Assembly (NCBI GenBank): GCA_002269645.1
Contig: NIVC01000553.1
Location: 156,554-220,553 of the forward strand
DNA length: 64,000 nucleotides
Direction of reading: 5' to 3'
DNA from: Macrostomum lignano
Taxonomy: Eukaryota
This document shows positions 35,798 through 62,520 of this stretch, piece after piece. Within the stretch, counting starts at the first letter, position 1, and each line of letters begins with the position of its first letter. The translations under genes were made by a program, and so were the position numbers. Under the pieces are notes generated by a model that did no database searches, had not been told where the DNA came from, and was given only the letters and a program-made list of their open reading frames with translations.

Positions 35798-36242
35798 ACT
35801 GACTGACTGACTGACTGACTGACTGACTGACTGACTGACTGACTGACTGACTGACTGACTGACTGACTGACTGACTGACTGACTGACTGACTGACTGACT
35901 GACTGACTGACTGACTGACTGACTGACTGACTGACTGACTGACTGACTGACTGACTGACTGACTGACTGACTGACTGACTGACTGACTGACTGACTGACT
36001 GACTGACTGACTGACTGACTGACTGACTGACTGACTGACTGACTGACTGACTGACTGACTGACTGACTGACTGACTGACTGACTGACTGACTGACTGACT
36101 GACTGACTGACTGACTGACTGACTGACTGACTGACTGACTGACTGACTGACTGACTGACTGACTGACTGACTGACTGACTGACTGACTGACTGACTGACT
36201 GACTGACTGACTGACTGACTGACTGACTGACTGACTGACTGA
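35798..36242. repeat. Perfect (GACT)n microsatellite, ~110 units
   Basis: Uninterrupted tract starting ~28 bp after the lectin copy 2 stop codon. Confidence 0.98.
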
Positions 36243-39301: not shown

Positions 39302-39666
39302 TTAATTAAGATTAAGGTAGGCAGTCAATTTTCATGGACCCAGTGACCATTGCTGGCATTGAAGAAGCTCGGTCTCAGCCACCTGCTCGCCAGACTGGAG
39401 CAGGCATTCAACACTGTACATTTGGTCTGTAGGCGACTGCAGCTCATGCAGCTCATCCGTTTGGCCAATTGGCGAAATTTCCAGGTCCAAAAATTAAAGC
39501 AGAGCCCTTCGATTGGCCAGAGCAGAGCTGCTCAATGAGGCTGTAAACATCAGGGCGGCCATAAAGTGCATCTCTTTGTGCAAAAAGATTTTGCCATCAT
39601 TTTCAACTCAGCCCCAAAACTGCAGCCAACAAATTCCAAGCCACATGGAAACTGAGAGCGTCGAAC

Positions 39667-40398
39667 ATGACATCAATGAAAGTTGTGTCCCTGCTGCTGA
39701 TGCTGAGCTCACCCGCTGTGTCCCCTGGCCAGGTGTTCCACGCCATCAACGGCTCGCTCTGCATCCGGCCCGAGCTCGTCAGAAACGAGCCTCAAGCCAG
39801 GTCGGACATCGAGTGCTCGCTGCTCTGCAGCATGGAGCCGCGCTGTCAGGCGTTCAGCCTGGCTGACGGTCCGTGCCAGCTGTTCCTGTTCGACAAGTGC
39901 AGCAAGTCGGTGAGGGACTGCGGCTGCTCCAGGAGAGGCCGGGTGTTCGTGAAGCAGCAGCCGGGACTCGAGCCGGGCGCGCTGTGTCCGTCCGACTACG
40001 GAGACGACCACTGCGGAGTGAAGTACAAGCTGTTCAATGCGATTAACACCTGGGCAGTGCAGAGACAGAGGTGCGAGTCGGAGAGCGGTCTGGTGATCAT
40101 GGCGGACGTGATCGACAGCGCCGAGCTGGCTGCCATCGGACACGTTTTCAACACGAAGGGTGGCGGCGTCTCCATGTGGGTCGGCGGCTTCCAGACTCCG
40201 GGCAGTGCGGAGCCCCGCGGAGGCTGGCGCTGGGTGGCCTGCGACATCAGCTTCGACGCCAGCCTGTGGGGCAGCGGAGAGCCCAGCAATGGAGAAGGCA
40301 AAGAGGACGCTATGGCCGCCCGAACCTTTCTGGGAGACGCTGACAGTCGCGGCGCAGTCAGAACCGGTCTGTGCGAGTGCCTGTCGCCGTTCAACTGA
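39667..40398 (+). CDS. Secreted PAN/apple-domain + C-type lectin-like protein, copy 3 (intact)
   Basis: 243-aa ORF paralogous to copy 1; ligand-site tripeptide EPS. Confidence 0.8.
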   Translation: MTSMKVVSLLLMLSSPAVSPGQVFHAINGSLCIRPELVRNEPQARSDIECSLLCSMEPRCQAFSLADGPCQLFLFDKCSKSVRDCGCSRRGRVFVKQQPGLEPGALCPSDYGDDHCGVKYKLFNAINTWAVQRQRCESESGLVIMADVIDSAELAAIGHVFNTKGGGVSMWVGGFQTPGSAEPRGGWRWVACDISFDASLWGSGEPSNGEGKEDAMAARTFLGDADSRGAVRTGLCECLSPFN

Positions 40399-40999: not shown

Positions 41000-41609
41000 C
41001 TGACCTCCCACCGTTGCTGGGCTCTCCGCTGCCCCACAGGCTGGCGTTGAAGCCGTCGGCTCCGCACTGCCCGGAGTCTGGAAGCCGCCGACCCACATGG
41101 AGACGCCGCCACCCTTCGTGTTGTAAATTTGCTGCACATGAGCCAGCTCATTGCCGTCGATCACGTCCGCCATGATCACCAGACCGCTCTCCGACTCGCA
41201 CCTGTCTCTGCACTGCCCAGGTGTTGATCGTATTGAAGAGCTTGTACTTCACTCCGCAGTGGTCGTCTCCGTAGTCGGACGGACACAGCGCGCCCGGCTC
41301 GAGTCCCGGCTGCTGCTTCACGAACACCCGGCCTCTCCTGGAGCAGCCGCAGTTCCTCACCGACTTGCTGCACTTGTCGAAAACGAACAGCTGGCACGGA
41401 CCGTCAGCCAGGCTGAACGCCTGGCAGTGCGTCTCCCTGCTGCAGAATGAAGAGCACTGGATGCTCGATTTAGCGTGTGAATAGGTTCTTATGAACTCAG
41501 GCCGGGTGCAGAGCGAGCCGTTGATGGCGTGGAACACCTGGCCAGGGGACACAGCGGGTGAGCTCAGCAGCATCAGCAGCAGCAGCGACACAACTTTCAT
41601 TGATGTCAT
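41000..41609 (-). pseudogene. PAN/apple + C-type lectin copy 4, inverted, frameshifted and 3'-truncated
   Basis: ATG at 41609 (MTSMKVVSLL). 2-nt deletion in cagagacag(ag)gtgc (~41200), further 1-nt and ~30-nt deletions, and homology ends after EPSNGG. Confidence 0.8.
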
Positions 41610-43467
41610 GTTCGACGCTCCCAACTTTTTATGGGCTGTTTGGGCTGAGTTGACAATAATCTGCAAAATATTTGCAGTAAGAGACGCACTTTATTGCCGC
41701 CCTGATGTTTGAAGCCTCAGTGAGCATCTCTGCTCTGGCCAATCCAAGGGATCTGTTATAATATTTGGACTTGGGAATTTCGCCAATTGGCCAAACGGAT
41801 GAGCTGCATGAGCTGCAGTCGCTTGTAGACCAAATGTGCAGTTTTGAATGTCTGCTCCAGTCTGGTGAGCAGGTGGCTGAGCTTCTCCAATGCGAGCAGG
41901 TGTCAGCGGGTCCATGAAAATCGATGCCGACCCTAACGCTAAACCTAAACCCTAAGCAAGTTGCAAGTTCCTAGTCATGTGCAAGTATTGCCAAGAACAA
42001 GATTGAAAAAATTATTTTATTGTGTTTTTTAAACGGATTTCACAATTTGCTATTCGACTCAGCGTTTGAATGGGGTGAATTAGTGGCAGGGGGCTGTGTG
42101 CACCCTGGCGCACTTTAAGCGACATTGCCACACAACCGGTGAGAGGCATTACTGCTTATTCCATCGAATCCCCTGAGCAGGCACACAGGCGCGCGGATAC
42201 GTACGCAGTCATACTGTACCAACACTTCTAACAAACTGCAACTGTAACGACTGACTCCAACCAATTTTTAACTGCTTGCCTTCTAATATCTATATCTCAA
42301 GACGACTAATAGAGCGAGTTGCTTACTACTGCTGAACATTTTGTTAATGGTGTGTATTTATTATTTACAATTGTTTGCCATACCATAGGCACTAGTAGCA
42401 GAGTTATAAGTCAGGAGTAAATCAATAGGTCTCCAAGCTTCTATCCACGTTTTGGTACTTGAAATGAATCCTGATGAAAATTCTCCCCCATCCCCCATGC
42501 CCCCGTGGTTCGCTGTAAGCTTTGAAAATTTGGGCTGAACCTCCTAACGAACAGAACTCTAAGGAAGGCAAGTTATATCAAAAGATGAACATTGGGTCTG
42601 CCTCCTATCAAAGGAAATAACCATTTTTGTTCTGAAATAATGAAAACCCATCTCCGTAATGCTTTTTTCGGTAAAACCTGCCTCCTAAAATTTTCCAAGA
42701 AACAGCTTCCGTCACACTTGAGTAGTATAAGGATCATATTTAATCGACTATTGTAGGGACTATTAAGAATAGGATTTAGGTTAGGTTAGGTTTGGAAATT
42801 AGAAAACTGTTGTTATCAGAGCGTGGTGGAGTGTACGCTCGTAGCAGTTGTGGACAGCTGCACTCTTACAAAAAGCCACAAGTGTTTGATAACGGCATTG
42901 TAAAGGGCGAGTGCAGGCCGCCTTAACTTCACTTATTTCCACTTTAAAGATTATTTATGCATTTTATGTGAGGCGGGGATTCAACTACATCTAGTACTAT
43001 ACAAGTTGTATCAGATGACCCACAATCGAGGAAGGTCCGTTGAATCGGCCGGAACGTTGCGAGCCTGGGAACGGCGCGTTATCTGATGATGCAAATTTTT
43101 TGAAGGGGTTGCGTGGGGGAAATTTATTATAAATACCTCGATGGTTGAACATCTATCCTCACCTGTTGTTCAACGCGGGTTCAGCTAGGCTAGACGCGGA
43201 TCAGCCCTAGGAGGGGGCTCTGCGGGGCTCTGCGGCAGAGGTGTGTAGAGGGGTGGGTCCACCAAGGGTACTAGACCCAGGTCACCTGAAAATTGGATTC
43301 CTCCTGTTCATAGAGCACAAAGCTAGTTTTTTGGGCTGCGCACAAAGTTTCGCAGACTATTGGAGAGGCCGGAGAGCCAGAGCCATAAGAGGCAAGATTG
43401 GGCGCCTTCAGGGGCGAAAATTTTGGGGGTCCTAACTGCGAAGCTCAATTTTTATTCCAAGGCCAGC

Positions 43468-46400
43468 CATAGAAATCTAGAATACTAACTGGAAGTGAAG
43501 GCTTCTTTGTCGGGGAGTTCAAGTCGTTCCTACCCGGGCCGATTCTTTTTAGCTTGAAAATGTTATAGTGACTAAACCCGCATCCAAAAGACCCTCCCAA
43601 AAACCCCCAGCCCTTTAAAACTCTTTCTTGTTGCTCATGCCTTCATCTTTCATTCCCTTCAAGCTCAGACAGCACCCAGATGTACACTGTAAATGCTGTA
43701 CAGTGATAGCAAACCCTGGACTGGAGCAAAACAGAGAGCTCTTTACAGTGGTGCACGATCAATTGAATAGGAGTGGGGATATTCTTGGGAGGAAGGAAAG
43801 GATATGGGAAATGAGAGGAGGGAAATGTACATCAAACAGTATTCTGCACAGGAAAATAATATATATAACAAAGAGGCAACCGGCTGTTAGCACCCAAATC
43901 CAGCCAAAACTGAATATCATAACTGAATATAATTTGCCTAGATGGGATACAAATGCGCTGCATTTAATTGCCAATCTGGCTACGCAAGAAGGACTTCGAA
44001 CAATGATTCGAATGTAAAAACATCTTTCCATGCCTTTCCGTTAAATGATCCACAACTGATGACTGAGTGGCTCCGAAGAATTCGCAGAGAGCACTATGCC
44101 CCAACTAAGGAGTCTCGGTTGTGCTCTGCGCACTTTTTGGAGTCGGACTTCATCAGCACATCGCAAGACTCCAACACTCGTCGAAAGCGCAAGAGAAATG
44201 CGCAACTGAGCCTGCGCGTTTTACGAAAGGGAGCCATCCCCTCTGTTTTCCCTCAACTTCCGGAAAGACTGCAGCCAATGGCTTCTACTTCCCGGACCGA
44301 ATCAGCCACAGCTGAGCTACGACACCAAGCCGAAAGTGACAGGCTAGAAACAGCGGCATCGGAGTTTCTGTCGTTGGATAAAGTGGGATCGCTGGAGGAA
44401 ATCAAGACCATGCTAGAGAGCAATCCGATTCCTGTTGGATTCGTTCCTGTGTTTGGCGCCGACTCCATTGCGTTCTGCCTGATTGATGTGGAGGATGTCC
44501 CGAATCTGGTCTGCTCTGTAAAAATTCAACGCGATATGATTGCTTCTTGGAAAGATCACCTTGTTTTCGCAGATTCAAAACTTATTAGCTTTAGCAAAAT
44601 CGTGGGGCATCCCTGATCCCAATCCGAGAAGCGCAGAAGCTAAATGGATTGAAGCTGCCATCGATTGCCTGTGCAACTTGCTGGAGGAATCGAATGACTC
44701 TGCCACGCCACTGATGCAGCAAGTCCAGTTTATAGTGGAGCAGCTTAGGCTTCGTTGCCAGGCAAAGGAGGCTTGACGGTACTCCCCTGGTTTGATAGTG
44801 TTTGCCATGGTGCTGAAGTCCACCAGTTCAGCTTGCTACCAGGTGCTGCTGGATCAAGACCTGCTTGTTCTGCCATCAGTTAGACGACTAACGGCGATTT
44901 CTAGTCCTCTGTCTGTCAGCCCTGGCGTCTCGGACGAAAATTACCTTCATCTACGGACTCAAAATCTGTCAATAATGGAGAGTAATGTCAACCTGATTAT
45001 TCATGAGATCGCCTAATATTACTACACCTAAATCGAAGAATAGACTACTCTTCCGGGTCTATTGTTGGCATGCAGGAGGCCAACCCGGCTTCAACAATGC
45101 TCTGCTTCATGGTCAAGTCAATCGCCGGAAAGTACCGCGATGTCGTCGCACTTTTCCGCCTCAGCAAGTTGACTGCCGAAATATTGCACGAGCACTACAG
45201 CGTCATGGGGATGCTGCAGCGCACAAACCTTAATGTAGTGACCATCTTGGTTGACAACCATTCCGCAAACCGTGCGTTTTTTGTCCACAAGCTTTGCGGT
45301 GGCATTCTGCAAACATGCGTACCCCATCCGTTTCATCGAGAAAAGAAGATTTTCCTTCTGTTTGACCCAACGCACACAATTAAAAACGTCTATAACAATT
45401 TTCAGAAAAGGCAGTCTCTGGAGCTCCCAGCAAAAGATAGCGCCTTTTTTAATGTCCCGCTACCACATGAGAAGAGAACGGCTGATTCCTTAATTGTAGC
45501 AAAATTTGAGAACATCAAAGAGCTGTACAATCTGGAACAGGACAAGCCACTCAAACTGGCCCCAAAACTCAACTCAAGCGTCATCGATCCAAAAAGTATT
45601 CAGAAGACCTCACCAAAGTTGGCACTAGCTGTGTTTTCTGAGTCTACCGCGCACGCCTTGGAATATTACTCGGCGAATCAAGGAAAGCCGTGGGGCGACA
45701 CTGCGACTTTTGTCCATGCGGTGACGCAACTTTGGAAAGTTTTAAATGTCAAGACGAGCTCAATTGGCAAACATAAAAGAGACTGTTGCTGAGATCCAGT
45801 CAGGTCAGACACAGATTGGAAGCTTACCTACCTCGCGGACGTCGCTAATTATCTGCGCGAATGGAAGGCCTGCAGAAGCAAAGGTCTTAGTGACGAAACC
45901 TTTCTGGCCCTCAGTCACAAGCTGGATGCTCTAGTTGAAGTCTGCAGGTACTTACTCATAGTCTTATGTTTGAATATGCTCTGGTCGGAGCTTTCCAGTC
46001 GGATCCACTGGAAGGAAGATTTGGATGGTACCGTCACCGAAAAGGATTAAACTACTATGTTTCGTGCAAAGATGTTCTGGATGGTGAGAAGGCAATCCGT
46101 TCTGTTTCAGTTCTGAAGTTCAGACATGCTGCACCACAGGCAATTCAGTCACTTGCAGCTGCAAAGGACCTGCACAGCGAGAGCAGCGACTTAATGGAAG
46201 AAGCCGGGCAAATTGCAGACCAACTAAACCTAATTGGGGAGATCGAAGCAGCTGATGCCAACGTAACCTACTATGTGGCTGGAAAAATCGCCAAGTCCAT
46301 CACAGCGCAAAGAAGCTGCACTGCATGCAACCAGCTACTAGTTGCCACTCCAGACGAATCTGCAGCCGAAGCGCCATCTGACTTTCTGCGACAGCTAGAC

Positions 46401-46943
46401 CGCGGTGGTCTAACGAACCCTTCTGACCTGGTGTTCACCATCTGCAAAGAGGCTTGGGTGATAATCATGCAACTGCAGCGCTGTCAGCGATTTCTGAAAT
46501 CGAGGTACAGACACATCAGTCTGTTTGAAGCAGTTTGTTCCAAGATTTTTGAACAACTCCCACAGTTGCGATTCCAAACGCATTGTGAGTATCAGCATCC
46601 AATCTTGCAGCTGGTGTGCAGGAAGATGTTTAACACTGCTGCAAAGAACTGGACTAAACACCTGTCCGCATCAGCGACTGGACCGACTGTAAGAAAAGTT
46701 GCAAAGTTTGGCGCCCACTGATGGTAAGTTTTGCATTCACTGCACTGCTTGAGAAATATAGCTTGTGTACTCTTGGTGAGCAATATACCTTAAATAAAAT
46801 TGTTTCAATGGAAAGAATGATAAATAAACATTAAAATTTTGGGGGAAATAAAACTTTTGGGGAAGAGGAGCTTTTTATCCCGGCCCGGGTATGTACGCCC
46901 CCGCGAAAGCCTTCACTTCCAGTTAGTATTCTAGATTTCTATG
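43468..46943 (+). mobile_element. P-superfamily DNA transposon (THAP transposase), decayed
   Basis: Perfect 37-bp TIR CATAGAAATCTAGAATACTAACTGGAAGTGAAGGCTT at 43468 and its reverse complement ending at 46943. No TSD detected. Confidence 0.9.
43942..46721 (+). pseudogene. THAP-domain P-element transposase (THAP9-like), stops and frameshifts
   Basis: THAP C..C..FH.FP..W...LCSAHF...IP.VFP; catalytic-region motifs IIHEI (D to H), VDNHSAN, FDPTHTIKN and FQSDPLEGRFG, split over several frames. Confidence 0.88.
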
Positions 46944-47627
46944 ACTGTTCAAGCCAGGAATTCGTTCCTCTGGTCTTTATGTGGGGTGGGGTAGGGAAGA
47001 GACGAAGTCAGTTAAGGGTGCCTAGCTAGCTAGCTTGGAGCACGCTCTAACTTGACAAGTCCGCTAGGGCAGGGAATACTCTACATATGGAAGTGACACT
47101 CCCCGATTCAGGCCTCTCAGGGCGGACCAACCCAGGCCAAGGTTTTTTTCGAACGAAAAAGCATGACTTGAAAAAAGCTTTGTTACTTCTTGCTTAGAGG
47201 GGGGTTTCAAACACTGTCCACTCTGTCCCGACTCCCTTATTTCGAAAGGAGCAGAAGAGCAGGGGCAGAGAGGACAGTGAGAAAAAAATAATGTTAGAGA
47301 GGAAAACACTGACTTAACAAAAATAAAGACACTTAATGTACATCCTGTATACAATAGTTGGCGCTCTGGGGATGAACCATGAACGTACATCTGCCTTTTC
47401 CCTGTCCTTTCAGTTGTGATTATTATATAAACTCCAACAAAGTTTCGAGTAACGAAAAATCCCATTTTCCTGCTGTGTTATTGACTGCAATTCCTGGTTC
47501 CGGCTATGCGAATGCGATCCACACCGACAGAGAAGAAAATTCGCTTTTATTCCTTTTCAAAGGACACTTCATTGCTGCAGCGACGGCTACATGCCATTCT
47601 GAACAAAAATCTGCATCAGCATTTTGA

Positions 47628-50531
47628 ATGTAGAACATTAAAGATCCACCATGTCGAAAATTAAAGAGCCACCATGTAGAATATTAAAAAGCCACCATGA
47701 AGAACATTAAAGAGCCACCATGTCAAACATTTAGAAGCCATTATGTCAAAGATTTAAGAGCCACCATGTCAAACATTTAAGAGCCACCATGTCAAACATA
47801 AAAGAGCCACCATTTTAAACATTGAAGAGCCACCATTTCGAACATTGAAGAGCCACCATGTCAAACAATTAAAAGCCAGCATGTCAAACATAAAAGAGCC
47901 ACTTTGTCGAACACTAAAGAGCCACCATGTCAAACATAAAAGAGACAACATGTCAGACATTGAAGAGCCACCGTATCAAACATAAAAGAGTTACCATGTA
48001 GAACATTAAAGATCCACCATGTCGAAAATTAAAGAGCCACCATGTCAAAAATAGAAGAGCCACCATGAAGAACATTAAAGAGCCACCATGAAGAACATTT
48101 AGAAGCCACCATGTCAAAGATTTAAGAGCCACCATGTCAAACATTAAAGAGCCACCATGTCAAACATAAAAGAGCCACCATTTTAAACATTGAAGAGCCA
48201 CCATTTCGAACATTGAAGAGCCACCATTTCAAACATTAAAGAGCCACCATGTCAAACAATTAAAAGCCAGCATGTCAAACATAAAAGAGCCACTTTGTCG
48301 AACACTAAAGAGCCACCATGTCAAACATAAAAGAGACATGTCAGACATTAAAAAGCCACCGTATCAAACATAAAAGAGTTACCATGTAGAACATTAAAGA
48401 GCCACCATGTCGAAAATTAAAGAGCCACCATGTAGAATATTAAAGAGGCACCATGAAGAACATTAAAGAGCCACCATGTCAAAAATAGAAGAGCCACCAT
48501 GTCTAACAGTAAAAAGCCAGCATGTCGAACATTAAAGAGCCACCAAGTCAAACATAAAAGAGCCACTTTGTCGAACATAAAAGAGCCACCATGTCAAACA
48601 TAAAAGGCCACCATGTCAAACATTTAGGAGCCACCATGTCAAACATATATGTGACTTTATGTCAAATATTAAAGAGCCACCATGTCAAACCTAAAAGAGC
48701 CACCATGTCGAACATAAAAGAGCCACTTTGTCGAACACTAAAGAGCCACCATGTCAAACATAAAAGAGACAACATGTCAGACATTAAAAAGCCACCGTAT
48801 CAAACATAAAAGAGTTACCATGTAGAACATTAAAGAGCCACCATGTCGAAAATTAAAGAGCCACCATGTAGAATATTAAAGAGGCACCATGAAGAACATT
48901 AAAGAGCCACCGTGTCAAAAATAGAAGAGCCACCATGTCAAACATAGAAGAGCCACCATGTCTAACAGTAAAAAGCCAGCATGTCGAACATTAAAGAGCC
49001 ACTAAGTCAAACATAAAAGAGCCACTTTGTCGAACATAAAAGAGCCACCATGTCAAACATAAAAGGCCACCATGTCAAACATTTAGGAGCCACCACGTCA
49101 AACATAGAAGAGCCACCATGTCTAACAGTAAAAAGCCAGCATGTCGAAAATTAAAGAGCCACCAAGTCAAACATAAAAGAGCCACTTTGTCGAACATAAA
49201 AGAGCCACCATGTCAAACATAAAAGGCCACCATGTCAAACATTTAGGAGCCACCATGTCAAACATATATGTGACTTTATGTCAAATATTAAAGAGCCACC
49301 ATGTCAAACATTTAAGAGCCACCATGTCAAACCTAAAAGAGCCACCATGTCAAACATAAAAGAGCCACCATTTCAAACATAAAAGAGCCACCATGTCAAA
49401 CATAAAAGAGCCACCATTTTAAACATTGAAGAGCCACCATTTCGAACATTGAAGAGCCACCATGTCAAACAATTAAAAGCCAGCATGTCTAACATAAAAG
49501 AGCCACTTTGTCGAACACTAAAGAGCCACCATGTCAAACATAAAAGAGACAACATGTCAGACATTAAAAAGCCACCGTATCAAACATAAAAGAGTTACCA
49601 TGTAGAACATTAAAGATCCACCATGTCGAAAATTAAAGAGCCACCATGTAGAATATTAAAAAGCCACCATGAAGAACATTAAAAAGCCACCATGTCAAAC
49701 ATTTAGAAGCCACCATGTCAAAGATTTAAGAGCCACCATGTCAAACATTTAAGAGCCATCATGTCAAACATAAAAGAGCCACCATTTTAAACATTGAAGA
49801 GCCACCATTTCGAACATTGAAGAGCCACCATGTCAAACAATTAAAAGCCAGCATGTCAAACATAAAAGAGCCACTTTGTCGAACACTAAAGAGCCACCAT
49901 GTCAAACATAAAAGAGACAACATGTCAGACATTAAAAAGCCACCGTATCAAACATAAAAGAGTTACCACGTAGAACATTAAAGATCCACCATGTCGAAAA
50001 TTAAAGAGCCACTATGTAGAATATTAAAGAGCCACCATGAAGAACATTAAAGAGCCACCATGTCAAACATTTAGAAGCCACCATGTCAAAGATTTAAGAG
50101 CCACCATGTCAAACATTTAAGAGCCACCATGTCAAACATAAAAGAGCCACCATTTCGAACATTGAAGAGCCACCATTTCGAACATTAAAGAGCCACCATG
50201 TCAAACAATTAAAAGCCAGCATGTCAAACATAAAAGAGCCACTTTGTCGAACACTAAAGAGCCACCATGTCAAACATAAAAGAGACAACATGTCCGACAT
50301 TAAAAAGCCACCGTATCAAACATAAAAGAGTTACCATGTAGAACATTAAAGAGCCACCATGTCGAAAATTAAAGAGCCACCATGTAGAATATTAAAGAGG
50401 CACCATGAAGAACATTAAAGAGCCACCATGTCAAAAATAGAAGAGCCACCATGTCAAACATAGAAGAGCCACCATGTCTAACAGTAAAAAGCCAGCATGT
50501 CGAACATTAAAGAGCCACCAAGTCAAACATA
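47628..50531. repeat. 23-bp satellite array A with ~370-bp higher-order repeat
   Basis: Monomer gtcaaacattaaagagccaccat. The variant block acaattaaaagccagcatgtc recurs at ~47866, 48257, 49470, 49836 and 50206. Confidence 0.95.
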
Positions 50532-50685
50532 GGAGACGCAATTTCAAACGTAAAAAGAAGCGTCATGCCAATCACAAAGGAGCCATTATAAAGCTAAGGA
50601 AATTGTTGCACTTGCTACTTATTGTCCAGTGGATGCTTGCTATTTAGTATAGGATCAATACTTGCTATCAATTGGTTGCTTGCTA

Positions 50686-50855
50686 TCTGGGGTGCTTGCT
50701 ATCTGGGGGTGCTTGCTATCTGGGGTGCTCGCTATCTGGGGGTGCTTGCTATCTGGGGGTGCTTGCTATCTGGGGGTGCTTGCTATCTGGGGGTGCTTGC
50801 TATCTGGTGGTGCTTGCTATCTAGAGGTGCTTGCTATCTGGGGGGATGCTTGCTG
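50686..50855. repeat. 17-bp minisatellite in the Helitron unit 1 tail
   Basis: Unit atctgggggtgcttgct. Confidence 0.92.
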
Positions 50856-51587
50856 TCTTAGGATGTTTTCTTTTTGCATTTCACTTCATCTGAGCAGTTT
50901 TTCTATTGACTATGTGAAGGCTTTGTTTGGCCATCTTATTGATACTTGTAGAGAACAGAGATTCTATCTAGATGTCCCCCATCGGGGGGCGAAGATTGCT
51001 AGTCCTATATACTAAAAATGAAATGTCTGTAACTAACTAGCTATGCGATAGATTTCAGAAAAAATGGCTCAACCGATTTTCTTCAAACTTGCACCATTCG
51101 ATCAGAAATGTTCCTGGGACGGTACATGTATCTTGGCTAAGAAATTGCTCAATGTTAAAGGGATTAAATATTCGAAAAACATGCTTTTTTGCAAAGGTCA
51201 AGCCAAATTTTTGACTTGAAATGCATTGTAAGAATGCTAGAGAAAAAACTGACTGGCTGAATTACGATTGTGATAAAGATTGCATCACAACAAGGTGAAA
51301 ACAGTGCCACAGAAACGCACACAAGACTTCATTGAAATTGCGTAACCATATTGCTAACTTTAATTGAGACTGATACTGGCTGACTGAGAAATTGATTATG
51401 TCATAACTTTTTACTCTAACCGACTTGCTATAAGTATTGAATTATAAGGGCCACAAGTCATGTTCTCCAATTGAAAAGAGATAGCCGGATGAAACAGACT
51501 GGAATGCTAATGTAGCGACCTTGGTTCGAATCTTAGTGGTGAAAAATGTTTTTTTTATTAAAACACGTTAAAAAACACAAAATTCTC

Positions 51588-54362
51588 AACATTAAAGAGC
51601 CACCATGTCGAAACATTAAAGAGCCACCATTTCAAACATTAAAGAGCCACAATGTCAAACATTAAAGAGCCACCATGTCGAACATAAAAGAGCCACCATA
51701 TCAAACATAAAAGAGTTACCATGTCAAACATTAAAGAGCCACCATGTCGAACATTAAAGAGCCACAATGTCAAACATTAAAGAGCCACCATTTCAAACCT
51801 AAAAGAGCCACCATGTCGAACATTAAAGAGCCACAATGGCAAACATTAAAGAGACACCATTTCAAACCTAAAAGAGTTACCATGTCAAACATTAAAGAGC
51901 CGCCAGGTCAAACATAAAACAGACACCATTAAGAACATTAAAGAGCCACCATGTCGAACATTAAAGAGCCACCATGTCAAACATAAAACAGCCACCATTT
52001 CGAAAATTAAAGAGCCACCATTTTAAACATTAAAGAGCCACCTTGTCAAATATTAAAGAGCCACCATGTCGAAACATTAAAGAGCCACCATTTCAAACAT
52101 TAAAGAGCCACAATGTCAAACATTAAAGAGCCACCATGTCGAACATAAAAGAGCCACCATATCAAACATAAAAGAGTTACCATGTCAAACATTAAAGAGC
52201 CACCATGTCGAACATTAAAGAGCCACAATGTCAAACATTAAAGAGCCACCATTTCAAACCTAAAAGAGCCACCATGTCGAACATTAAAGAGCCACAATGG
52301 CAAACATTAAAGAGACACCATTTCAAACCTAAAAGAGTTACCATGTCAAACATTAAAGAGCCGCCAGGTCAAACATAAAACAGACACCATTAAGAACATT
52401 AAAGAGCCACCATGTCGAACATTAAAGAGCCACCATGTCAAACATAAAACAGCCACCATTTCGAAAATTAAAGAGCCACCATTTTAAACATTAAAGAGCC
52501 ACCTTGTCAAATATTAAAGAGCCACAATGTCAAACATTAAAGAGCCACCTTATCAAACATTAAAGAGCCACCATGTCAAACATTAAAGAGCCACCATGTA
52601 AAACATTAAAGAGCCACCATGTCGAACATAAAAGAGGTACCATGTCAAACATTAAAGACCCACCAGGTCAAACATGAAAGTGCCACCATGTCAAATATTA
52701 AAAAGCCACCATGTCAAACATTAAAGAGCCACCAGGTCAAACATGAAAGTGCCACCAGGTCAAGCATATACATGACTCCATGTCAAATATTAAAGAGCCA
52801 CCATGTCAAACATTAAAGAGCCACCAGGTCAAACATGAAAGTGCCACCATGTAAAACATTAAAGAGCCACCATGTCAAACATTAAAGAGCCACCAGGTCA
52901 AATATATACATGACTCCATGTCAAACATTAAAGAGCCACCATGTCGAACATAAAAGGGCCACCATGTCAAATATTAAAGAGCCACCATGTCAAACATTAA
53001 AGAGCCACCAGGTCAAACATGAAAGTGCCACCATGTAAAACATTAAAGAGCCACCATGTCGAACATTTAAGAAGCACCATGTCAAACATAAAATAGCCAC
53101 CATGTGAAACATATAGGTGACTCCATGTAAAACATTAAAGAGCTACCATACCAGACATATACATGACTCCATGTCAAACATATACGTGACTCCATGTTAG
53201 ACATTTAAGAGCCACCATGTCGAACATTAAAGAGCCAACGTGTTAAAAATACAAGAGCCACCAGGTCAAACATATATATGACTCCATGTCAAACATTAAA
53301 GAGCCACCATGTCGAACATAAAAGGGCCACCATGTCAAATATTAAAGAGCCACCATGTCAAACATTTAAGAGCCACCATGTCAAACATATACATGACTCT
53401 ATGTCAAACGTTAAAGAGACACCATGTCAAACATTACAGAGCCACCATGTCAAACATTTAAGAGCCACCAGGTCAAACATGAAAGTGCCACCATGTAAAA
53501 CATTAAAGAGCCACCATGTCAAACATATACGTAACTCCATGTCAAACATTGAAGAGACCCCATGTCAAACATTAAAGAGCCACCACGTCGAACATAAAAG
53601 AGCCACCATGTAAAACATATACGTAACTCCATGTCAAACATTGAAGCGACACCATGTCGAACATAAAAGAGCCACCATGTCGAACATTAAAGAGCCACCA
53701 TGTCGAACATAAAAGAGCTACCATGTCAAACATTAAAGAGCCACCATGTTAAACATAAAAGAGCCATCATGTCAAACATATAAGTGACTTTATGTCGAAC
53801 ATTAAAGAGCCACCATGTCTAACATTAAAGAGCCACCATGTCCAACATTAAAGAGCCACCATGTCAAAAATTAAAGAGCCACCATGTCTATCATTAAAGA
53901 GCCATCATCTCAAACATTAAAGAGCTACTTTGTCTAACATTAAAGAGCCACCATGTCAAACATTAAAGAGCTACTTTGTCTAACATTAAAGAGCCACCAT
54001 GTCAAACATTAAAGAGCCACCATGTCAAACATTAAAGAGCCACCATGTCAAACATAAAAGAGCCACCTTTTTGAACATTAAAGAGCCACCATTTCGAACA
54101 TTAAAGAGCCACCATGTCAAACATAATAGAGCCACCATGTAAAACATTAAAAAGCCACTTTGTCAAACATAGAAGAGCCCCCATGTCAAACATAGAAGAG
54201 CCCCCATGTCAAACATAGAAGAGCCCCCATGTCAAACATAGAAGAGCCCCCATGTCAAACATAGAAGAGCCACTATGTCAGACATTGAAAAGCCACCGTA
54301 TCAAACATAAAAGAGTTACCATGTACGAGCGTAGAACATAAAAGAGCCACCCTGTAAAACAT
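51588..54362. repeat. 23-bp satellite array B (same monomer; 461-bp internal duplication)
   Basis: Monomer period 23 (51951 to 51974); the block at 51605 repeats at 52066. Confidence 0.95.
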
Positions 54363-54459
54363 AAAAGATACACAATTTCAAACGTAAAAGTAAGCGAATT
54401 TTAAAGGAGCCGCTATAATGCTAAGGAAATTGTCGCACTAGCTACTTATTGTCTGGTGG

Positions 54460-54850
54460 ATGCTTGCTATTTGGGGATGCTATCTATCTTGGGGATGCTT
54501 GCTATCTGGGGGATGCTTGCTATCTGGGGGATGCTTGCTATCTGGGGGATGCTTGCTATCTGGGGATGCTTGCTATCTGGGGGATGCTTGCTATCTGGGG
54601 GATGCTTGCTATCTGAGGGATGCTTGCTATCTGGGGGATGCTTGCTATCTGGGGGATGCTTGCTATCTGGGGGATGCTTGCTATCTGGGGGATGCTTGCT
54701 ATCTGAGGGATGCTTGCTATCTTGGGGATGCTTGCTATCTGGGGGATGCTTGCAATCTGGGGATGCTTGCTATCTGGGGATGCTTGCCATCTTGGGGATG
54801 CTTGCTATCTAGGGGATGCTTGCTATCTGGGGGATGCTTGCAGTCTTGGG
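54460..54850. repeat. 18-bp minisatellite in the Helitron unit 2 tail
   Basis: Unit atctgggggatgcttgct. Confidence 0.93.
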
Positions 54851-55845
54851 ATGATTTCTTTTTGCAATGCACTTTATTTGAGCAGTTTGTCTGTTGTCTT
54901 TTTGAAGGATTTTTGGCTGTCTTTTTGTTACTTTAGAAAACAGAGATTCTATCCAGATGTCCCCCATCCGGGGGTCGAAGATTGCTAGTCCCAACTGAAA
55001 ATTTAGATCAGAGGCCGGCAAACTCCGTCCACGAAGTCTCTCTATCAATGGCAATTGATGGCAATGGCAAACTTCAATGGCAATTCGGCTCGGCCCGCAC
55101 AAAGTTGCTGTCCCTTCTAAGTTCTCTCCTCTCCTCTCTCCTCTCCTCACCTTTCTTATCACCTCTATTCTTTCATCTCCTCGTTTTTCTTATCTTCTGT
55201 CTTCTCTCCTTTCTTTTCTCCTCTCATCGATCTTCTCTCTTTTCTCTCTCTTATTTCTCTCCTTTCTTTTCTCCTTTCATCGATCTTCTCTTCTGTCTCT
55301 CTCATTTCTCTCCTTTTTTCTCCTCTCATCGATGTCTCATCTCCTCTTTATTCTTCTCTCTCCCCCCATTCCCTCACCTTTCCACTCTCATCTGGGTGGG
55401 TTTTGGGGACGAGTTGGCCCGGGTTGGTCCGCCCCCATTGGGGAGTGTCACTTCCATATGTAGAGTATTCCCTGGCTAGGGCACCTAGATTCAGATAGCT
55501 AGCTAGCTTGGAGCACGCTCTAACTTGGGTAGTCCGCTAGGGGTTGGAGCATGCTCCCGTGCTCCCAGTAAAGTGTAGCTAGTTAATTGTGGAGCATGCT
55601 CCCTGATGACAGCCAATGGAGTAACACGGAAGAAAAGACCAATAAAAGTGCGTCCTTTTAAATTTGTTGCTTGTCTTATTTAGACTTTACATTAATAAAA
55701 ACATTAGGCCAACCTAGGCCTATCCTTATGTACTTAGACCTTTATTTAATTAGAAATACAACGGTAGTGCCAACACACCAGTACTCATTACAACATAACA
55801 CAAGTTTTTCTTTGTGCTATATTTTTGCAATAAATTTGCTGCAAC

Positions 55846-58800
55846 CACAGACCAAGAAATATAACTAGACTGCGCATCCCGCATTTCTTGCTTGGGCTTG
55901 TTTTTGACCAAATGACAGTGGAAAAAATGGTCCCTCTCTCCCTACTCGAAAACGATCGATAATTGTGCTTGGGCAAGAAGTTAGGGTACAGGCCTGCTTT
56001 TCTTTCCGCCTGCGTTGATATGTAGCTATATATTAAAGTGGTCTGGGGCCAAAAATATAAACTTATAAAACACATACTTGAAATACAAAGCAAGCTGCTT
56101 CAGTCTAATCTAAATCAATCCTCACCAAATCGAACTGCCATGGAAGAATCTAATTCTTCAAAACTGCCTAGCAGAAAAAGTCACGGCAGCTTTTGCTGCG
56201 CTCTAGGCTGCTCGAACAACTCGTCAATGTCTCCGGCAGTGTCCTTCCATTTTTTTCCAAAAGACACTGAAATGAAGAGAAAGTGGCTGGTTGCGCTCCG
56301 ACGCAAGGAGTTCAAACCATCGGCGACCACCCAAGTCTGCTCGGTCCACTTTGCAGAGTCTTGCTTCAAGGAACAACTAGCTGGCTTTCTGCCCACCACA
56401 AGAAGGCGGCTGTATCCAAATGCTGTTCCTTCTATCTTCCCGACGCTCCCTGACCGCCTGCAGCCTGTTGAAAAGAAGCGAAAAACAGCCACCGCCGCCG
56501 CCGCCGCTGCTCAGGAAGTTGACTTTGCTGCATTTTTGAAAGCGCCGGAATGTAGCAAGACGAAGGCTCAGCCAACTGACACGGAGGCAGATGAACCAGA
56601 ACAACCCCTACAAGAACTGCATGCCAACTGTGTGGCCAGAGAACTATTCGAAGAAAAGGTGAGAGTCCTAAAAAACCTGAGGCGCAGATACAAAAGGCTT
56701 TTGGCTGCTCATAAGAGATCTAAGAAAAGTGCTAAGGCCATTGAAATCCTGCGTCGGACGGTACAGAGCAAGTACAGAAAAATTCGATCTCTGCGCTCAA
56801 AGCACAGGCAAATTAAACATAGAGCCAAAACATTGAAGGACGCAATTCTGGATCTAAAGGCCAAGTGCATGTTAAACGAAGCAGCGGCATCTCGATTGAA
56901 TTTCTTGACCTCCGATTCACTGCTGAGCAGCATCGTGCCTTGCAATAGAAAAAGGACAAAGAGGTTCTCTGACGAAGTGCGCAAATTCGCCTCTACATTG
57001 CATTTCTATAGTCCGAAGGCTTATGAGTATGTACGAAAGTACTTTCAGCTTCCACATCCTGCGTCACTTAGAAAATGGCTCTCAAATGCAAAGTGCTTTC
57101 CAGGGTTTTGCGATCAGGCTTTCCAGGAACTTTCGCGGCGACGCAGCTCCACTGACGGCCAAGCCTTTGACTACTGCAACGTTGTTGCTGATGAAATGTC
57201 GCTAGAGTCGATGATTGAATGGAATTCAAGCGAAGGTATGTTTTTTGGCTACGTTGACAAAGGTGATGGCAAACCAAGTGATCAGGAGGCGTCTTCGGCA
57301 CTGGTAGTGATGGCAGTGGGGCTTAAGAGCTATTGGAAGCTGCCTTTAGGGTATTTTCTAGTGAATGGAGTTGACGGCGAATTTCTTTCGAGCGTTGTAG
57401 AGGAATCCATTCAGCGACTGTACCAGGTTGGCGTCATAGCAACATCATTCACATGCGATGGAACTCAGCACAACATTCGAGCGATCGAACTCCTTGGCTC
57501 CAGGATAAGTTCTCCGAACGAGGTCGTCGCCTGCTTCCCGCACCCCTGCGATCCTAGCATTCAGGTTGCAGCCTTCCTGGATGTGCCTCACATGTTAAAG
57601 CTGATTCGCAATCAGTGGCAGTCACTGGGAAGATTTGTTTGGCCGAACAGAGGAAATATTGAATGGAAATATGTTTCCATGTTGCAGCAAGTACAAGAAA
57701 GTCATGGACTCCGACTTGGAAACAAGTTAAGCAGGCATCACATCAACTTTGCTAATTTAAAGATGAAGGTCTATTTGGCATCACAACTGTTTAGCAAGTC
57801 AGTGGCCGACTCTTTGCGATGGGTGCATCAGCAAGGTGTGATCGGATTTGAGCACTCTGATGTGCTAGTCACCGCAGATTTCGTTGAGCACATGAATGAT
57901 TTGTTCGACGCTTTCAATTCCAAGCGGCTGGTCAGTTATGGCGCCAAAATGGCGCTTAGAGCTGACAATCAGTCGGATTGGATCGATTTCTTCTCTAGCT
58001 CGATCGAACTTCTCCGTAGCCTTGAAACTCCGGCTGGCTGTAAGATAGTAGAAACCGCAAAGAAGACTGGCTTCCTAGGCTTCATCACCAACTGCCATGG
58101 CATTATGGAGCTCGCTAAGTATTTATTTTCGACTGGCGAATTCTTCTTTCTTTGCACTTACAAGCTTTCGCAGGATTTTCTCGAACTGTTTTTAATGCAG
58201 TAAGGCTACGAAATGGCTGGAACCATAACCCAACGCCCACGCAATTTCGCTCAGCATTCAGGCAGCTGTTGGTGCATGCCGGAGGTGGAATTCTACAGTC
58301 CGTGAGTCCGAATGTGAGGCAGCAGGATGCCACTATTCAGTTATCATTGTCTTGTCTGCCATCATCATCAGGACAGCAGCCATGGAAGCAGATGAAAGCT
58401 CAAAATGAAATGGGACTGAGTCTGGGTTTAATCCAACACTGCAAGAATGCATCGGTGTGTGAAATTTGCCAGTCCATCGTGTGCTATATCGCAGGCGCGG
58501 TCGTCCGAAGAATGATGAAAGCAGTTGAATGTGCTCCGTGCAGTTCAGCTCTGATCGCAAGCTCTGAGACGCCAGGAGCTTCACGCGGACCATGCTCACT
58601 CGTTGCCATAAAAAATGTTTTGAACAAGGAAGGAACTGGCGGCCTGATTTTTCCTAGCAGCAATGTCCTGCGGGTGCTGCTCAATGCAGAGACTGTTGTT
58701 CGGCGTTCCAGCTACAGCAGCGGATTCTCTAGTGATTTAGCTGTTCAGGAGATTCTGCGCATGTCAATCGATCTGTTCCCTGAACTGGACTCTCATTCGG

Positions 58801-59329
58801 CATCCGCGAGTATCAGCATTGAGTCTCACAAGCTGCATTTGATTCGAGTAATGGCTATGCTTTTTATAAATATTCGAATGAAGAAGCTGGCTAAGGATCT
58901 TTCACGCGCTGGAAGAAAACCCGGCAAGAGGCAAAGGCTGCTTCGAACAGCGATTTTTCTTAATTTGTAATCAGCGTATTCGCATATGGAGGCTGGTAAG
59001 TTATGGCTTCAATGCATTCTGTTTAAGCTTATTCCCGTGATAAACTATATATTTGCCATTAAATGCGTGCAAAAAATTCTAGATAAATTAAAAATGAATC
59101 TGTAGTTGTTGATTTGTTAATCCTATTTCTTACTGAGTCTGAATTTTCACTAGTTACGAACATAAAGAAAAAAGAGACCCCGACAAGCTGAGTTGGCTGA
59201 GGGTAAGAAGAAAGGCCCGGGCACAATTATCGATCGTGGGGGAGTGGGCACTGGGGTGCCACTTTTCCTACTAGGAAAAAGGCACAACTTTTTTTACCCT
59301 CATGCGCAGTCTAGTTATATTGGTCTGTG
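55846..59329 (+). mobile_element. P-superfamily DNA transposon, nearly intact
   Basis: TIR CACAGACCAA(gaaa)TATAACTAGACTGCGCAT; perfect 8-bp TSD GCTGCAAC at 55838-55845 and 59330-59337; internal inverted motif cgatcgataattgtgc at ~55955 and 59221. Confidence 0.92.
56140..58970 (+). CDS. THAP9-like P-element transposase (~943 aa) with a single 1-nt frameshift in a T5 run at 58189-58193
   Basis: THAP domain (CCALGC..FHFFP..W..CSVHF..AVPSIFP); RFSDEVRKFASTLHFYSPKAYEYVR; VADEM, CDG, DVPHMLKLIRN, KMKVYLASQLFS and LSQDFLELF/NAVR..G.N.NPT..QF..AFR.L. Confidence 0.85.
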
Positions 59330-59658
59330 GCTGCAACCCCCTATGTACGCAATTTTTATTGGTTTATACTGGGAGCATGCTTCGGGTATAGCTAGCTATG
59401 GAGCACAGGAGCATGCTCCAGCCCCTAGCCCAGATTGGGCTTCGTGTGACTCAACCCTAGCATGTCCGTTCATATCCCACTCTTCTTTCTTTTAGTTCGT
59501 AAATGTACTCTCTCATTCTTCCCGTCCTTATATACAGTAAGAAAATGGTAGGAATATAGTCTTCCTGCAAACCTGCAACCCTGCAATCTCAATCTACCTT
59601 ACTGATTCAAGTTTTTACTTCACCAATCTTATATACTAAAATCTATTACTAAAAGAAC

Positions 59659-62520
59659 ATGGGTTACAAGTGTTGTGCATTTGGCTGCACAAGTGGCTAC
59701 AAAAATCATTCGCAACAAGTCGATACTAAGGTGACATTTCATTCTATTCCGAAAGATGAAGCTCTCAAAGCTTTATGGTTGAAAGCCAACCCAAGAAAAG
59801 ATTTTGTTCCTTCTAAGCACTCGAGGATGTGCTCCCTGCATTTCGTGCCCAGTGACTTCATCGAGGAACATTCCGACAGCAATTTTCGCAGATCGAAGAA
59901 CTTTGAAACGAAGAAGCTGACGAAAAGGTACTTAAAGAAGGACGCAGTACCAACTATCTTTCCTAACGCACCGTCTTATCTGTCATCAAGGCCAGCCGCT
60001 GTTCGACACTCCGCTTCGATTGCAACTGTCTCCGGTCGCCTAGACAAAGAAGTTCAACGCTTAGAAGCCATGGAAGAGGCATTTGAAGATGACGATAACA
60101 TCAGCTCTCTGAGTCTGGCGGAGGTGAAAGTTCGACTGGCTGAGGAGAGCAAAAAGCCTGAAGGATTTCAGGTTGTCATCATGGACTTGATTTTAATGAT
60201 CTATTTCTTAGCGTATGTCAGTGGCGTTCTAGACTTGGCCGGTTCAATCTCAGTTTACGCTGATTTTAAAGTGCAGGTAAGTTGTGGCAAGGAAGTCCTT
60301 TCGCCTAGGCTTTACCATGGCATCTTGCCAGATAGACTAAGCACTTTGTCTCAATTATTGAATCTCTTGGCTCGCTTAAAAGCATGGTGTAGTGATGACA
60401 AGTGTGCGTCAGACCGACTTTTGGACTCCGTTATCACGAACTTAAAAAGATACATAGGAATTCTAGTGGAGGGGTGTGACAAACATTGGAAGCTTAGCTT
60501 CATTCTTGAACAAATCGAGTTGGCTTCTTCAACAAAGTACCATCGGAATTACTCGCCCGAGCTATCGATTTTCGCCTATCTTGTCCACGCGTCGAGTTCA
60601 GCAGCCTACCGAGTTCTACTGGAAGAAGATGTGCTATGCCTGCCATCCGTAAAAACTCTGCAGAAGATTACTAAACGCGTACAGGGTGAGTCTGGACTGG
60701 ATAATGGACTGGCCTATTTAAACCTTCGAATCTCTAACCTAAACAATTTCGAAAGAACATGTTTGCTGATTATTGACGAAATATACATAGCAAAACGTGT
60801 AGAATATAGCAGCGTGGAAGTCTACGGTCTTACAGCTGATGGTGCAGTTGTGTCTACTTTGCTTTGCTTTATGGTAAAATCTCTGGTGAGCAAGTTCAAA
60901 GACATCGTAGCAATATTTCCTATGGCGAATCTAACAGCCGAAAAGCAATACCACTGCTACCAAGAAGTCATGAGAACAGTGAGGAGCGTTGGATTTAATA
61001 TCGTTGCGATTTCTGTAGACAATGCTGCAGTTAATCGTAAGTTCTTCCATATTTATCTCTGCAATGGCTTGTTAACAACTAGTATTTCAGATCCTGTGTC
61101 TGGACAGCCAATCTTTCTAATTTTTGACCCAGTCCATGACTTAAAAAACGTCTACAACAATTTTCAATCTCGAAAACTTTCCCGCTGTCCAGAATTTCTA
61201 TCATACTTGCCAAATGGTTGCCTTGCTAATTTTAACCACATTGCGGAACTGTTTCAAATGGAGTCCTCTGCGCCTCTTAAGAAGGCACACTAGCTTTCAC
61301 GCACCGTTCTGGAACCAAAAAATATTGAACGGGTCTCTGTACAACTGGCAACTTCTGTGTTCTCGGAGTCCACGAGAGATGCGCTCATATGCTATTCTAG
61401 ACACAGCGGAAAGCCTGAATGGAACGATGCGGCCCTTTTTATATCACTTGTTTTAAAGCTCTGGAATGTGCTGAACGTAAAGTCGTCCGTCAAAGGTAAG
61501 CATAAGCGAGACATAAGTATGGACCCCGTGCGCTCGTCTTTGGACTGGAAGTTAGTGTTTCTTAGAGATTTTGCCAATTTTTTGCAACGCTGGAAGTCTA
61601 GTGGCCGGTTGGGATTAACGGCGGAAACGTTCCTCGCTTTGAGGCAAGCTTGTCTTGCTATTTCGGTCTGTGCTAGTTTCTTGATTGATCATCTAGGATT
61701 CAATTATGTTTTGCTAGGTCAACTGCAATCAGATGCATTGGAATCTCGATTTGGCTGGCTGCGGCAGCTATCTGGTGCAAATTACTTCGTGTCAATGAAG
61801 CAAGTTTTTGAGAATGACAGAAAAATCCGCGCTGTCTTGCTTCTGAAGTTTTCAAATGTAACGCTGCTGGATATCGAAAAAGCAGCTGCACTTTCAGTGG
61901 AAGAACGCCAACCGGAAAAAACAACGGAACTTGAAAATGTCGCCGACTCTGTATCTGAGGCTATCCAACTCGATACAAAGCCATCGATTGATGATCTTAA
62001 TATAATTTTCTACGTAACTGGTGCTGTCGCTCGCTCTACTGTTGCGGTAACAAAGTGCAAGTAGTGTGTTGACTCGCTTATTGCCACAGATGAGAGCTCA
62101 AGAACTGACGAAGCCAACCTGTGCCATTCAATTTTTCTGGACAGCGTCGACAGAGGCGGCCTTGTAAGGCCCAGTGATTTTGCTTATCAGGTCGCAGTTC
62201 ACTGTTGGAAAGTATTTCTGGGAATTTGGAATAGTGAAGCCACTAAAAACATGTTTTTGACGTTATCTTGCCATCGACAATTGTTCTGTAAAGTTTTTGA
62301 TCGGTGCACCGACGATGAGCGGTTTTCAAGCGTACTCTTCGGCAATAACATGTGCACTGCCGGTCACAATATTCAGCACCATCTAGTTTGTAGGCTTTTT
62401 AACTGCTTTAACTGCTTTGCCAAGAATTTCGTAAAAGACATGTCAAGCGCTACTCAGTCTAAAAGCGGTCCGAACCAGCGAAAGATTCCTAAGCTTTCAG
62501 GAGCGTCTGCAATGCATTAG
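59659..62520 (+). pseudogene. THAP P-element transposase, one continuous frame (953 codons) interrupted by two in-frame TAG codons
   Basis: ORFs at 59659, 61357 and 62251 share one frame; stops at 61291-61293 and 62062-62064. Motifs IIDEIY, VDNAAVN, FDPVHDLKN and LQSDALESRFG are intact. Termini not identified. Confidence 0.88.

Follow-up and report, generated by a model that had tools for sequence, protein, structure and literature searches.

Dispersed satellite-like arrays on chromosome arms are increasingly traced to transposons, be they Helitron/Helentron elements (oyster, Drosophila), of which DINE-TR1 in Drosophila, a non-autonomous Helentron/Helitron element with a satellite-like array, is one, or foldback or miniature inverted-repeat transposable element (MITE) carriers. 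In the assembly of the flatworm Macrostomum lignano tandem repeats amount to 13.1% and DNA transposons to 3.05% (PMC5730564), and the literature searched holds no account of how the arrays of this species spread. The present analysis concerns an 8.4-kb element of M. lignano, located in a stretch of 64,000 nucleotides (nt) of contig NIVC01000553.1 (hereafter the window, in whose positions all coordinates are given), in which long tandem arrays with Helitron-like ends are enclosed by a shell having the ends of a P-superfamily transposon. Each layer of this element is of a known kind; their combination is new for flatworms and possibly for P-type shells.

For the outer layer a parallel is found in the Drosophila repleta group in the pair formed by BuT5 and its master P element, BuT5 being a ~1-kb non-coding element that is mobilised in trans by a P-family transposase, resembles the coding element only in the terminal tens to hundreds of bp, possesses subterminal inverted repeats and has a target site duplication (TSD) within 7–9 bp (PMC3698922). 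Within the P superfamily the TSD is 7 bp long in 1360 and Galileo and 8 bp in P (PMC3698922). Tetris of D. virilis and Galileo, the latter a member of the P superfamily, are cut-and-paste elements with terminal inverted repeats (TIRs) and with expandable internal tandem repeats from which satellites are seeded (PMC4079207, PMC4168063). For the inner layer the parallel is Cg_HINE of the Pacific oyster, a non-autonomous element of rolling-circle type, without TSD, that consists of a left flank, a central array, a short simple repeat and a palindrome-ended right flank, and of which whole elements can be found in tandem (PMC7492417, PMC8268682).

The M. lignano element is bounded by two copies of a 35-bp TIR, CAGGGAATACTCTACATATGGAAGTGACACTCCCC, which agree at 35/35 positions and are its only matches in the window at ≤3 mismatches, 0 being expected; the inverted match of the ends can be followed over 38 bp with 97% identity, further in there is a 21-nt subterminal inverted repeat, and the inverted similarity between the two ends ceases after ~62 bp. 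The TIRs are flanked by an exact 7-bp TSD, GCTAGGG, a 7/7 agreement that at fixed junctions has a chance probability of ~6e-5; an 8-bp reading of the duplication (GCTAGGGC) needs the C at 47070 to be counted twice. This heptamer is concentrated in the neighbourhood: of its 8 occurrences in the window, 5 are situated around the element and the ends of its downstream neighbour, the P-type element P#2. Between the TSDs the element measures 8,405 bp, 1,041 bp of which are arms and 7,364 bp two head-to-tail modules, each composed of a 23-bp array, a spacer, a 17- or 18-bp minisatellite and a tail; a Pfam scan of the open reading frames (ORFs) inside the element gave no family above threshold. The nested-transposon structure is real and well preserved. 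The perfect 35-bp TIRs and the exact 7-bp TSD reported in the first-pass annotation of this DNA are thus confirmed, and the two Helitron-like units described there do contain an array and a minisatellite each, but they are not equivalent, since the 585 bp at 51003–51587 have no counterpart before array 1.

A mis-join, a collapsed repeat or mere chance could in principle mimic such an element, and the M. lignano assemblies are indeed repeat-rich and partly redundant (PMC5730564); this explanation is nevertheless very improbable, because mis-assembly does not yield perfect 35-bp TIRs together with an exact TSD, because 116 of the 122 monomers of array 1 and 108 of the 115 of array 2 are exactly 23 bp long, their variation consisting of substitutions and not of long-read indel noise, and because the flanks on both sides, once joined, restore a continuous 62-bp tandem duplication.

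The affinity of the shell can be deduced from a second neighbour, P#1, a decayed upstream element that encodes THAP, TNP-like RNaseH and GTP-binding-insertion (GBD) domains. The motif GAATACT, followed 3–7 nt later by TGGAAGTGA, occurs 4 times in the 64 kb, 0 being expected, and all four sites are TIRs either of P#1 or of the element under study; both kinds of TIR start with CAG. Furthermore, the terminal ~75 bp of the right end, TIR included, align with ~78 bp of the right end of P#1 through GGGGGCG-AC--ACCCGGGCC and CTC-TCCCCAAAA, with a score that was reached by 0 of 500 shuffles; the similarity to the ends of P#2 is at background level. The 7-bp TSD, the same length as in Galileo, falls inside the 7–8 bp range of the superfamily. 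Since its ends are homologous to those of P#1 and none of its ORFs matches a protein family above threshold, the shell is related, as a non-autonomous element, to the P#1 family, and its assignment to the P superfamily, as well as the P-type call of the first-pass annotation, is supported by this homology to a neighbour with recognisable transposase domains.

Like BuT5, the shell is a non-coding element of ~1 kb whose likeness to a coding element is confined to its ends and which carries subterminal inverted repeats and a TSD within the same size range. It differs from BuT5, which has 3-bp TIRs and is cargo-free, in possessing 35-bp perfect TIRs and 7.4 kb of seemingly foreign tandem-repeat modules. 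The TIR tip of P#1 is 12 bp longer, so that P#1 stands for a sister subfamily and is not a demonstrated master, unlike the coding member of the BuT5 pair. P#1 represents the probable mobilising family. The long repetitive inverted termini of foldback-like elements of the Galileo type are not present, the arrays being direct and the inverted similarity stopping at ~62 bp; in Tetris and Galileo the repeats reside inside long inverted termini, whereas the M. lignano element combines short termini with internal arrays in direct orientation that are delimited by Helitron-type ends.

As to the modules, both tails contain the hairpin TCCCCCATC(C)GGGGG and, ~10 nt further on, CTAG with TCC following, in a tail sequence of the form GATGTCCCCCATC(C)GGGGGNCGAAGATTGCTAG. 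Both hairpins have a 5-bp G/C stem and a 4-nt loop and are placed 9–10 nt before CTAG, as in the canonical 3′ terminus of Helitrons, and in both modules T is the base next to the 3′ end. The homology between the modules stops at 51005 and 54991, respectively, i.e. 3 bp past CTAG. When both strands (128 kb) were scanned with a generic Helitron 3′ motif (a GC hairpin 5–15 nt before CTRR-T), 4 sites were found in the window, compared with ~2.2 in shuffles, and two of the four are the homology boundaries of the modules. At its other end, module 2 begins with TCC at 51003, directly after the CTAG of module 1, so that its 5′ neighbour is the terminal G of the latter. An exact repeat of its first 21 nt is found at an unrelated locus (L002, 2470–2450, minus strand), which together with L001 makes up the 43 kb of other M. 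lignano DNA with which the window was compared; in L002 the block follows an A, and the homology starts exactly at TCC and ends after the 21 nt. Helitron 5′ ends display an identity limited to a terminal block that starts at TC after A, and it is the start of the L002 block at TC after A that suggests reading the beginning of module 2 as a Helitron 5′ end. A 15-nt version of this terminus, TCTTATATACTAAAA, follows an A at 59627 of the window (0.02 expected), which makes 3 occurrences of the 5′ terminal motif in ~107 kb of M. lignano DNA. A candidate 5′ end of module 1, namely an A followed by TCCTGTATAC at 47343, agrees at 9/10 bases (~0.016 expected), no homology being seen beyond it.

From these ends we infer an origin of the modules from Helitrons, an origin that is partly supported: the proposal that the arrays are Helitron-borne is strengthened by the 3′ signature at the homology boundary and by the recurring 5′ start, whereas the 5′ part of module 1, a second 3′ end and a Rep/helicase partner were looked for in vain, as specified below. 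In their organisation the modules resemble Cg_HINE, from which they differ in several respects: HINEs have 11–12-bp subterminal inverted repeats and prefer T-rich/TT sites, whereas the modules run from TC through the hairpin to CTAG and may point to a target between A and T; the second short repeat of the modules is 3′ of the array, while the microsatellite of HINEs is in the left flank; and the module monomers are 23 bp long in ~120 copies. Subterminal repeats of the Helentron/HINE type were not detected, the best complementarity between the 5′ and 3′ ends being a 10-nt A-rich stretch with a background-level score.

Two further ideas about parts of the element were considered and rejected, namely derivation of the 585-bp region of module 2, which contains the B-box-like GGTTCGAATC, from a tRNA or a short interspersed element, no tRNA and no Rfam family being recognised in it, and homology either of the left arm to this region or of the sequences just upstream of the two arrays to each other, neither of which was significant. 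It may also be mentioned that the 5′ motif TCYTATATACTAAAA, at 59627–59641 and preceded by A, lies 32 bp upstream of the start codon of a third P-type gene, P#3, with a looser copy, TCCTTATATACAGTAAGAAAATGG, ~100 bp further upstream (59525–59550). The P#3 gene could accordingly be located inside a Helitron-like element, or the motif could have another role; no 3′ end matching the motif upstream of P#3 was found.

The consensus of both 23-bp arrays is AACATTAAAGAGCCACCATGTCA, and the identity between monomers is ~0.81 within and between the arrays alike. A single array of 290 copies at 47634–54324, as returned by TRF, was discarded as an extension artefact spanning the 1-kb interruption. No further 23-bp arrays exist in the remaining 55 kb of the window or the 43 kb of other M. 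lignano DNA, and the 23-mer, the minisatellites and the TIR have no occurrence in the searchable literature; a representative protein search with a satellite-encoded ORF returned only unrelated 23-aa-periodic proteins from other tandem repeats, at ≤57% identity.

If the hairpin and CTAG were coincidental, the arrays, the minisatellites and the tails could all be native to the P-type element, the pair going back to a segmental duplication in an ancestral copy of the element and the 585 bp between its members being unrelated, in which case, too, the cargo would have been aboard. This would account for module 1 starting directly with its array, without the 5′ part of a Helitron, and for the active internal segmental duplication seen in array 1, and would be in keeping with the internal tandem repeats documented in TIR transposons (Tetris, PMC4079207; Galileo, PMC4168063). 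We consider it quite improbable, however, given that the homology boundary is within 3 bp of a hairpin-CTAG-T arrangement whose background is ~2 per 128 kb scanned, that the next base opens the 21-nt block recurring exactly after A at an unrelated locus, and that the arrays are direct and not inverted, unlike those of foldback-type P relatives.

Table. Features of the composite element and of the neighbouring P-type elements (positions in the window)
Feature	Position	Strand	Remarks
TSD, left copy, GCTAGGG	47063–47069	.	Identical to 55475–55481
Left TIR, 35 bp	47070–47104	+	Starts CAGGG; 0 mismatches to right TIR; holds GAATACT-N7-TGGAAGTGA
Left arm, unique, non-coding	47105–47627	+	Subterminal repeat 47120–47140; speculative Helitron 5′ end (A followed by TCCTGTATAC) at 47343
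23-bp array 1	47628–50536	+	~122 monomers (2.9 kb); 16-monomer higher-order period; segmental duplicates 92.5–93.6%
Spacer 1, array to minisatellite	50537–50676	+	86.9% identical to spacer 2 (aligned columns)
17-bp minisatellite TGCTTGCTATCTGGGGG	50677–50858	+	10.7 copies
Tail 1, Helitron-type 3′ end of module 1	50859–51002	+	Hairpin CCCCC/GGGGG; CTAG 50999–51002
Module 2 5′ region, putative Helitron-type 5′ end	51003–51587	+	Starts TCCTATATACTAAAAATGAAA; first 21 nt = L002 2470–2450 (−)
23-bp array 2	51588–54390	+	~115 monomers (2.8 kb); consensus as array 1
Spacer 2	54391–54451	+	Aligned to spacer 1
18-bp minisatellite TCTGGGGGATGCTTGCTA	54452–54841	+	21.9 copies; one fixed base differs from 17-mer
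Tail 2, with hairpin	54842–54988	+	CTAG 54985–54988, then T
Right arm, unique, non-coding	54989–55439	+	CT-rich low complexity 55122–55333; subterminal repeat 55414–55434
Right TIR, 35 bp	55440–55474	−	35/35 to left TIR
TSD, right copy, GCTAGGG	55475–55481	.	Identical to left copy
P#1, decayed P/THAP9-type element	43464–46947	+	41-bp TIRs 40/41; 8-bp TSD 6/8 (TCCAAGGC / TTCAAGCC)
P#2, nearly intact P/THAP9-type	55536–59429	+	One frame change vs 900-aa relatives; ends unrelated to the focal element
P#3, P/THAP9-type gene	59659–62226	+	Domain matches

In which order were the layers put together? The two tails, which are not repetitive, share 86.8% identity, with 19 mismatches over 144 positions plus indels, and so have diverged by ~13%, and the spacers are 86.9% identical, whereas the pairs formed by TIR and TSD show 0 differences in 42 positions (35 + 7). 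A duplication of the module in place after the insertion, at 13% divergence, predicts ~5.5 differences in the 42 positions, and the probability of finding 0 is 0.868^42, or ~0.003; comparison of the divergence of the tails with the 0/42 differences in TIR and TSD therefore leads to rejection of this scenario. Since the insertion the divergence has a 95% upper bound of ~7%. Each minisatellite is homogeneous, with a fixed difference of 17 vs 18 bp between the modules, and arrays 1 and 2 have no orthologous register; array 1 has undergone later internal segmental duplications (92.5–93.6% identity), and at the 93% identity of these duplicates the probability of 0/42 is only ~0.05. To judge from this clock, the module pair is older, as sequence, than the present insertion, and what the internal dating shows is only that the modules were not duplicated in place after it. 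Two histories are left, in that either the cargo was aboard at the last transposition or a pre-diverged dimer, or two successive Helitrons, entered later.

In the first history, a non-autonomous P-superfamily shell of ~1 kb, the ends of which would be recognised by the transposase of the family represented by P#1, holds an insert of 7.4–7.6 kb in which two Helitron-like non-autonomous modules follow each other head to tail. The P-type transposase, acting in trans, would cut at the two 35-bp TIRs and relocate the arrays as passive cargo, and the whole element would have been pasted into the left terminal repeat region of P#2, within a cluster of three P-type genes, by a 7-bp staggered cut at GCTAGGG. 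That the module pair was already aboard when the shell last moved is something that we infer with no more than a slight leaning, because it needs only a P-type transposase moving 8.4 kb, while late entry needs either a bypassed terminator or a double hit in a short time; the probability of a P-type shell that carried the Helitron-like pair at its last move is put at about even.

In the second history a P-type MITE (~0.76–1.0 kb) inserted first, the Helitron-like modules entered afterwards, and the composite never moved. By rolling-circle transposition the modules could have arrived together, as a read-through dimer already diverged at another place, or by two successive insertions from diverged masters into the same dinucleotide, for which the host A together with the T of the 5′ TC of a resident Helitron would constitute a valid target between A and T. 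Nested insertion is the commonest origin of structures of this kind. Moreover, the candidate start at 47343 and the CTAG followed by T at 54988/54989 would place a complete composite in an A-T site, the three occurrences of the 5′ motif in ~107 kb hint at an abundant family, and the satellite, the tails and the arms are absent from the other sequence examined. It must be supposed, on the other hand, that a well-preserved internal terminator was bypassed or that one dinucleotide was hit twice, all events have to fit into the short time set by the 0/42 differences (~7% upper bound), and the match at 47343 is only 9/10 (~0.016 expected), with no homology after it. This late nesting is tentatively retained as a possible, though doubtful, origin of the structure.

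Several observations weigh against the cargo having been aboard, or against the Helitron nature of that cargo. The dating allows the later entry of a pre-diverged Helitron dimer or of two successive insertions between A and T, and the possible start at 47343, by which the complete composite would occupy an A-T site, fits late nesting equally. The rest of the window and the 43 kb of L001 and L002 contain neither a further copy of the TIRs, arms, satellite or tails, the 3′ tail included, nor a second insertion, empty site or 1-kb empty shell. Comparison with the left arm and with the sequences upstream of the arrays yielded no region of module 1 homologous to 51003–51587, and the ORFs of the window encode no Rep/helicase domains. 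Finally, P#1 is itself broken, so that an intact partner transposase is assumed, none being seen. A complete second module copy with both termini was likewise not found in the window and the 43 kb, where only the 5′ terminus recurs; a protein-level search for other copies with an ORF spanning the left TIR and arm gave no matches, and neither the TIR nor the Helitron tail had an exact match in the metagenome contigs scanned (0 each). Ordinary nested insertions and composite non-autonomous families resemble the present case in that an element sits within an element whose outer ends are intact and possibly still usable, and nothing separates an ordinary nest from this one until a second filled copy appears.

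The surroundings of the element are rich in relatives. Three sets of ORFs in the window encode THAP, P-element HTH, TNP-like RNaseH and GBD domains and correspond to P#1, P#2 and P#3, which are tandemly arranged on one strand within 19 kb and are only ~25–35% identical to one another; with the composite element this makes four P-superfamily elements within 20 kb, the three with transposase-type ORFs all being on the plus strand. The first-pass annotation had mentioned one nearly intact P transposase with different TIRs at a distance of ~370 bp. The description suits P#2, although three P/THAP9-type genes exist and the TIRs of P#1 are related to those of the element, while the distance has to be corrected, in that the ORF of P#2 starts 557–659 bp downstream of the element. 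P#1, which has suffered at least 3 frame changes, lies upstream, its last ORF ending 342 bp and its TIR 115 bp before the element. P#2 has a 30-nt inverted repeat (55536–55565 / 59400–59429); a search for TIRs of P#3 found none. Among proteins, the neighbouring transposase ORF is matched best by M. lignano entries, at 76–99% identity.

Removal of the element together with one copy of the TSD restores a 62-bp tandem duplication (47023–47069 vs 55496–55542, 94%) adjoining the 30-nt inverted repeat of P#2, and the pre-insertion site would have read …AAGTCCGCTAGGGCACCTAG…. GCTAGGG is present at both ends of P#2 (55475, 55536, and 59423 and 59455 on the minus strand), and CAAGTCCG / CATGTCCG at 47056–47063 / 59461–59468, which agree at 7/8 positions, are a candidate 8-bp TSD of P#2. 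P#2 may have a 6-bp terminal repeat, CTAGGG, with 30-nt subterminal repeats and an 8-bp TSD, and, if the candidate TSD is accepted, the insertion would sit inside the extreme left end of P#2. An ACATGT palindrome and the tandem duplication leave the placement of the P#2 TSD ambiguous, and the insertion is accordingly either in the left terminal repeat region of P#2 or 54 bp outside it.

A UniProt model from the ML2 assembly of M. lignano, P0005 (900 aa), joins exons of P#1 (43942–46643) to the N-terminus of P#2 (56164–56625) by a splice that crosses the position of the 8.4-kb element. The identity of this model to the window, 94–99%, indicates that a paralogous or allelic copy of the locus exists.

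The rest of the window, which has 43.7% G+C and a CpG observed/expected ratio of 0.71, contains other repeats and genes. Between 6379 and 26490 there are ~18 unrelated minisatellite arrays with units of 20–72 bp, 0.15–1.3 kb each and spaced at intervals of 0.4–0.7 kb, as well as GATA and GTCT microsatellites; the spacers are not mutually homologous, no TIRs surround the arrays, and a spacer ORF (7032–7625) encodes an ‘Out at first’ C-terminal domain. A foldback-like cluster of inverted repeats, with arms of 41–73 nt that are 81–95% complementary within 420 bp, occupies 435–855, and a piggyBac-type transposase (DDE_Tnp_1_7 and its zinc finger), split into two ORFs, is found at 37236–38758 on the minus strand. 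A secreted lectin-like gene is present in four copies, one of them inverted, that are 85–91% identical (30116–31182, 35073–35770, 39314–40398 and 41053–41936), two of which are separated by a perfect (ACTG)111 microsatellite (35798–36242, 445 bp, 100% matches). The closest database relatives of these copies are C-type lectin domain proteins of M. lignano with ≤57% identity; the protein collection contains none of the four copies, nor any of the ten window ORFs looked up in it.

No TIR-bounded structure or transposon boundaries are associated with the ~20 other arrays of the window, and the composite element consequently offers no general explanation for the arrays of this genome. If, however, the reading in which the cargo was aboard is true, a P-type shell relocating kilobase-scale Helitron-borne arrays would represent a concrete and testable route by which such arrays spread, one transposon family hitch-hiking on the machinery of another. 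Further mobility, with the composite as a live multi-copy shuttle in which a P-type transposase repeatedly moves multi-kb Helitron-derived arrays, is unlikely; if true, two unrelated transposition mechanisms would together scatter satellite blocks and would add to the tandem-repeat content of the M. lignano genome, which at 13% is unusually high.

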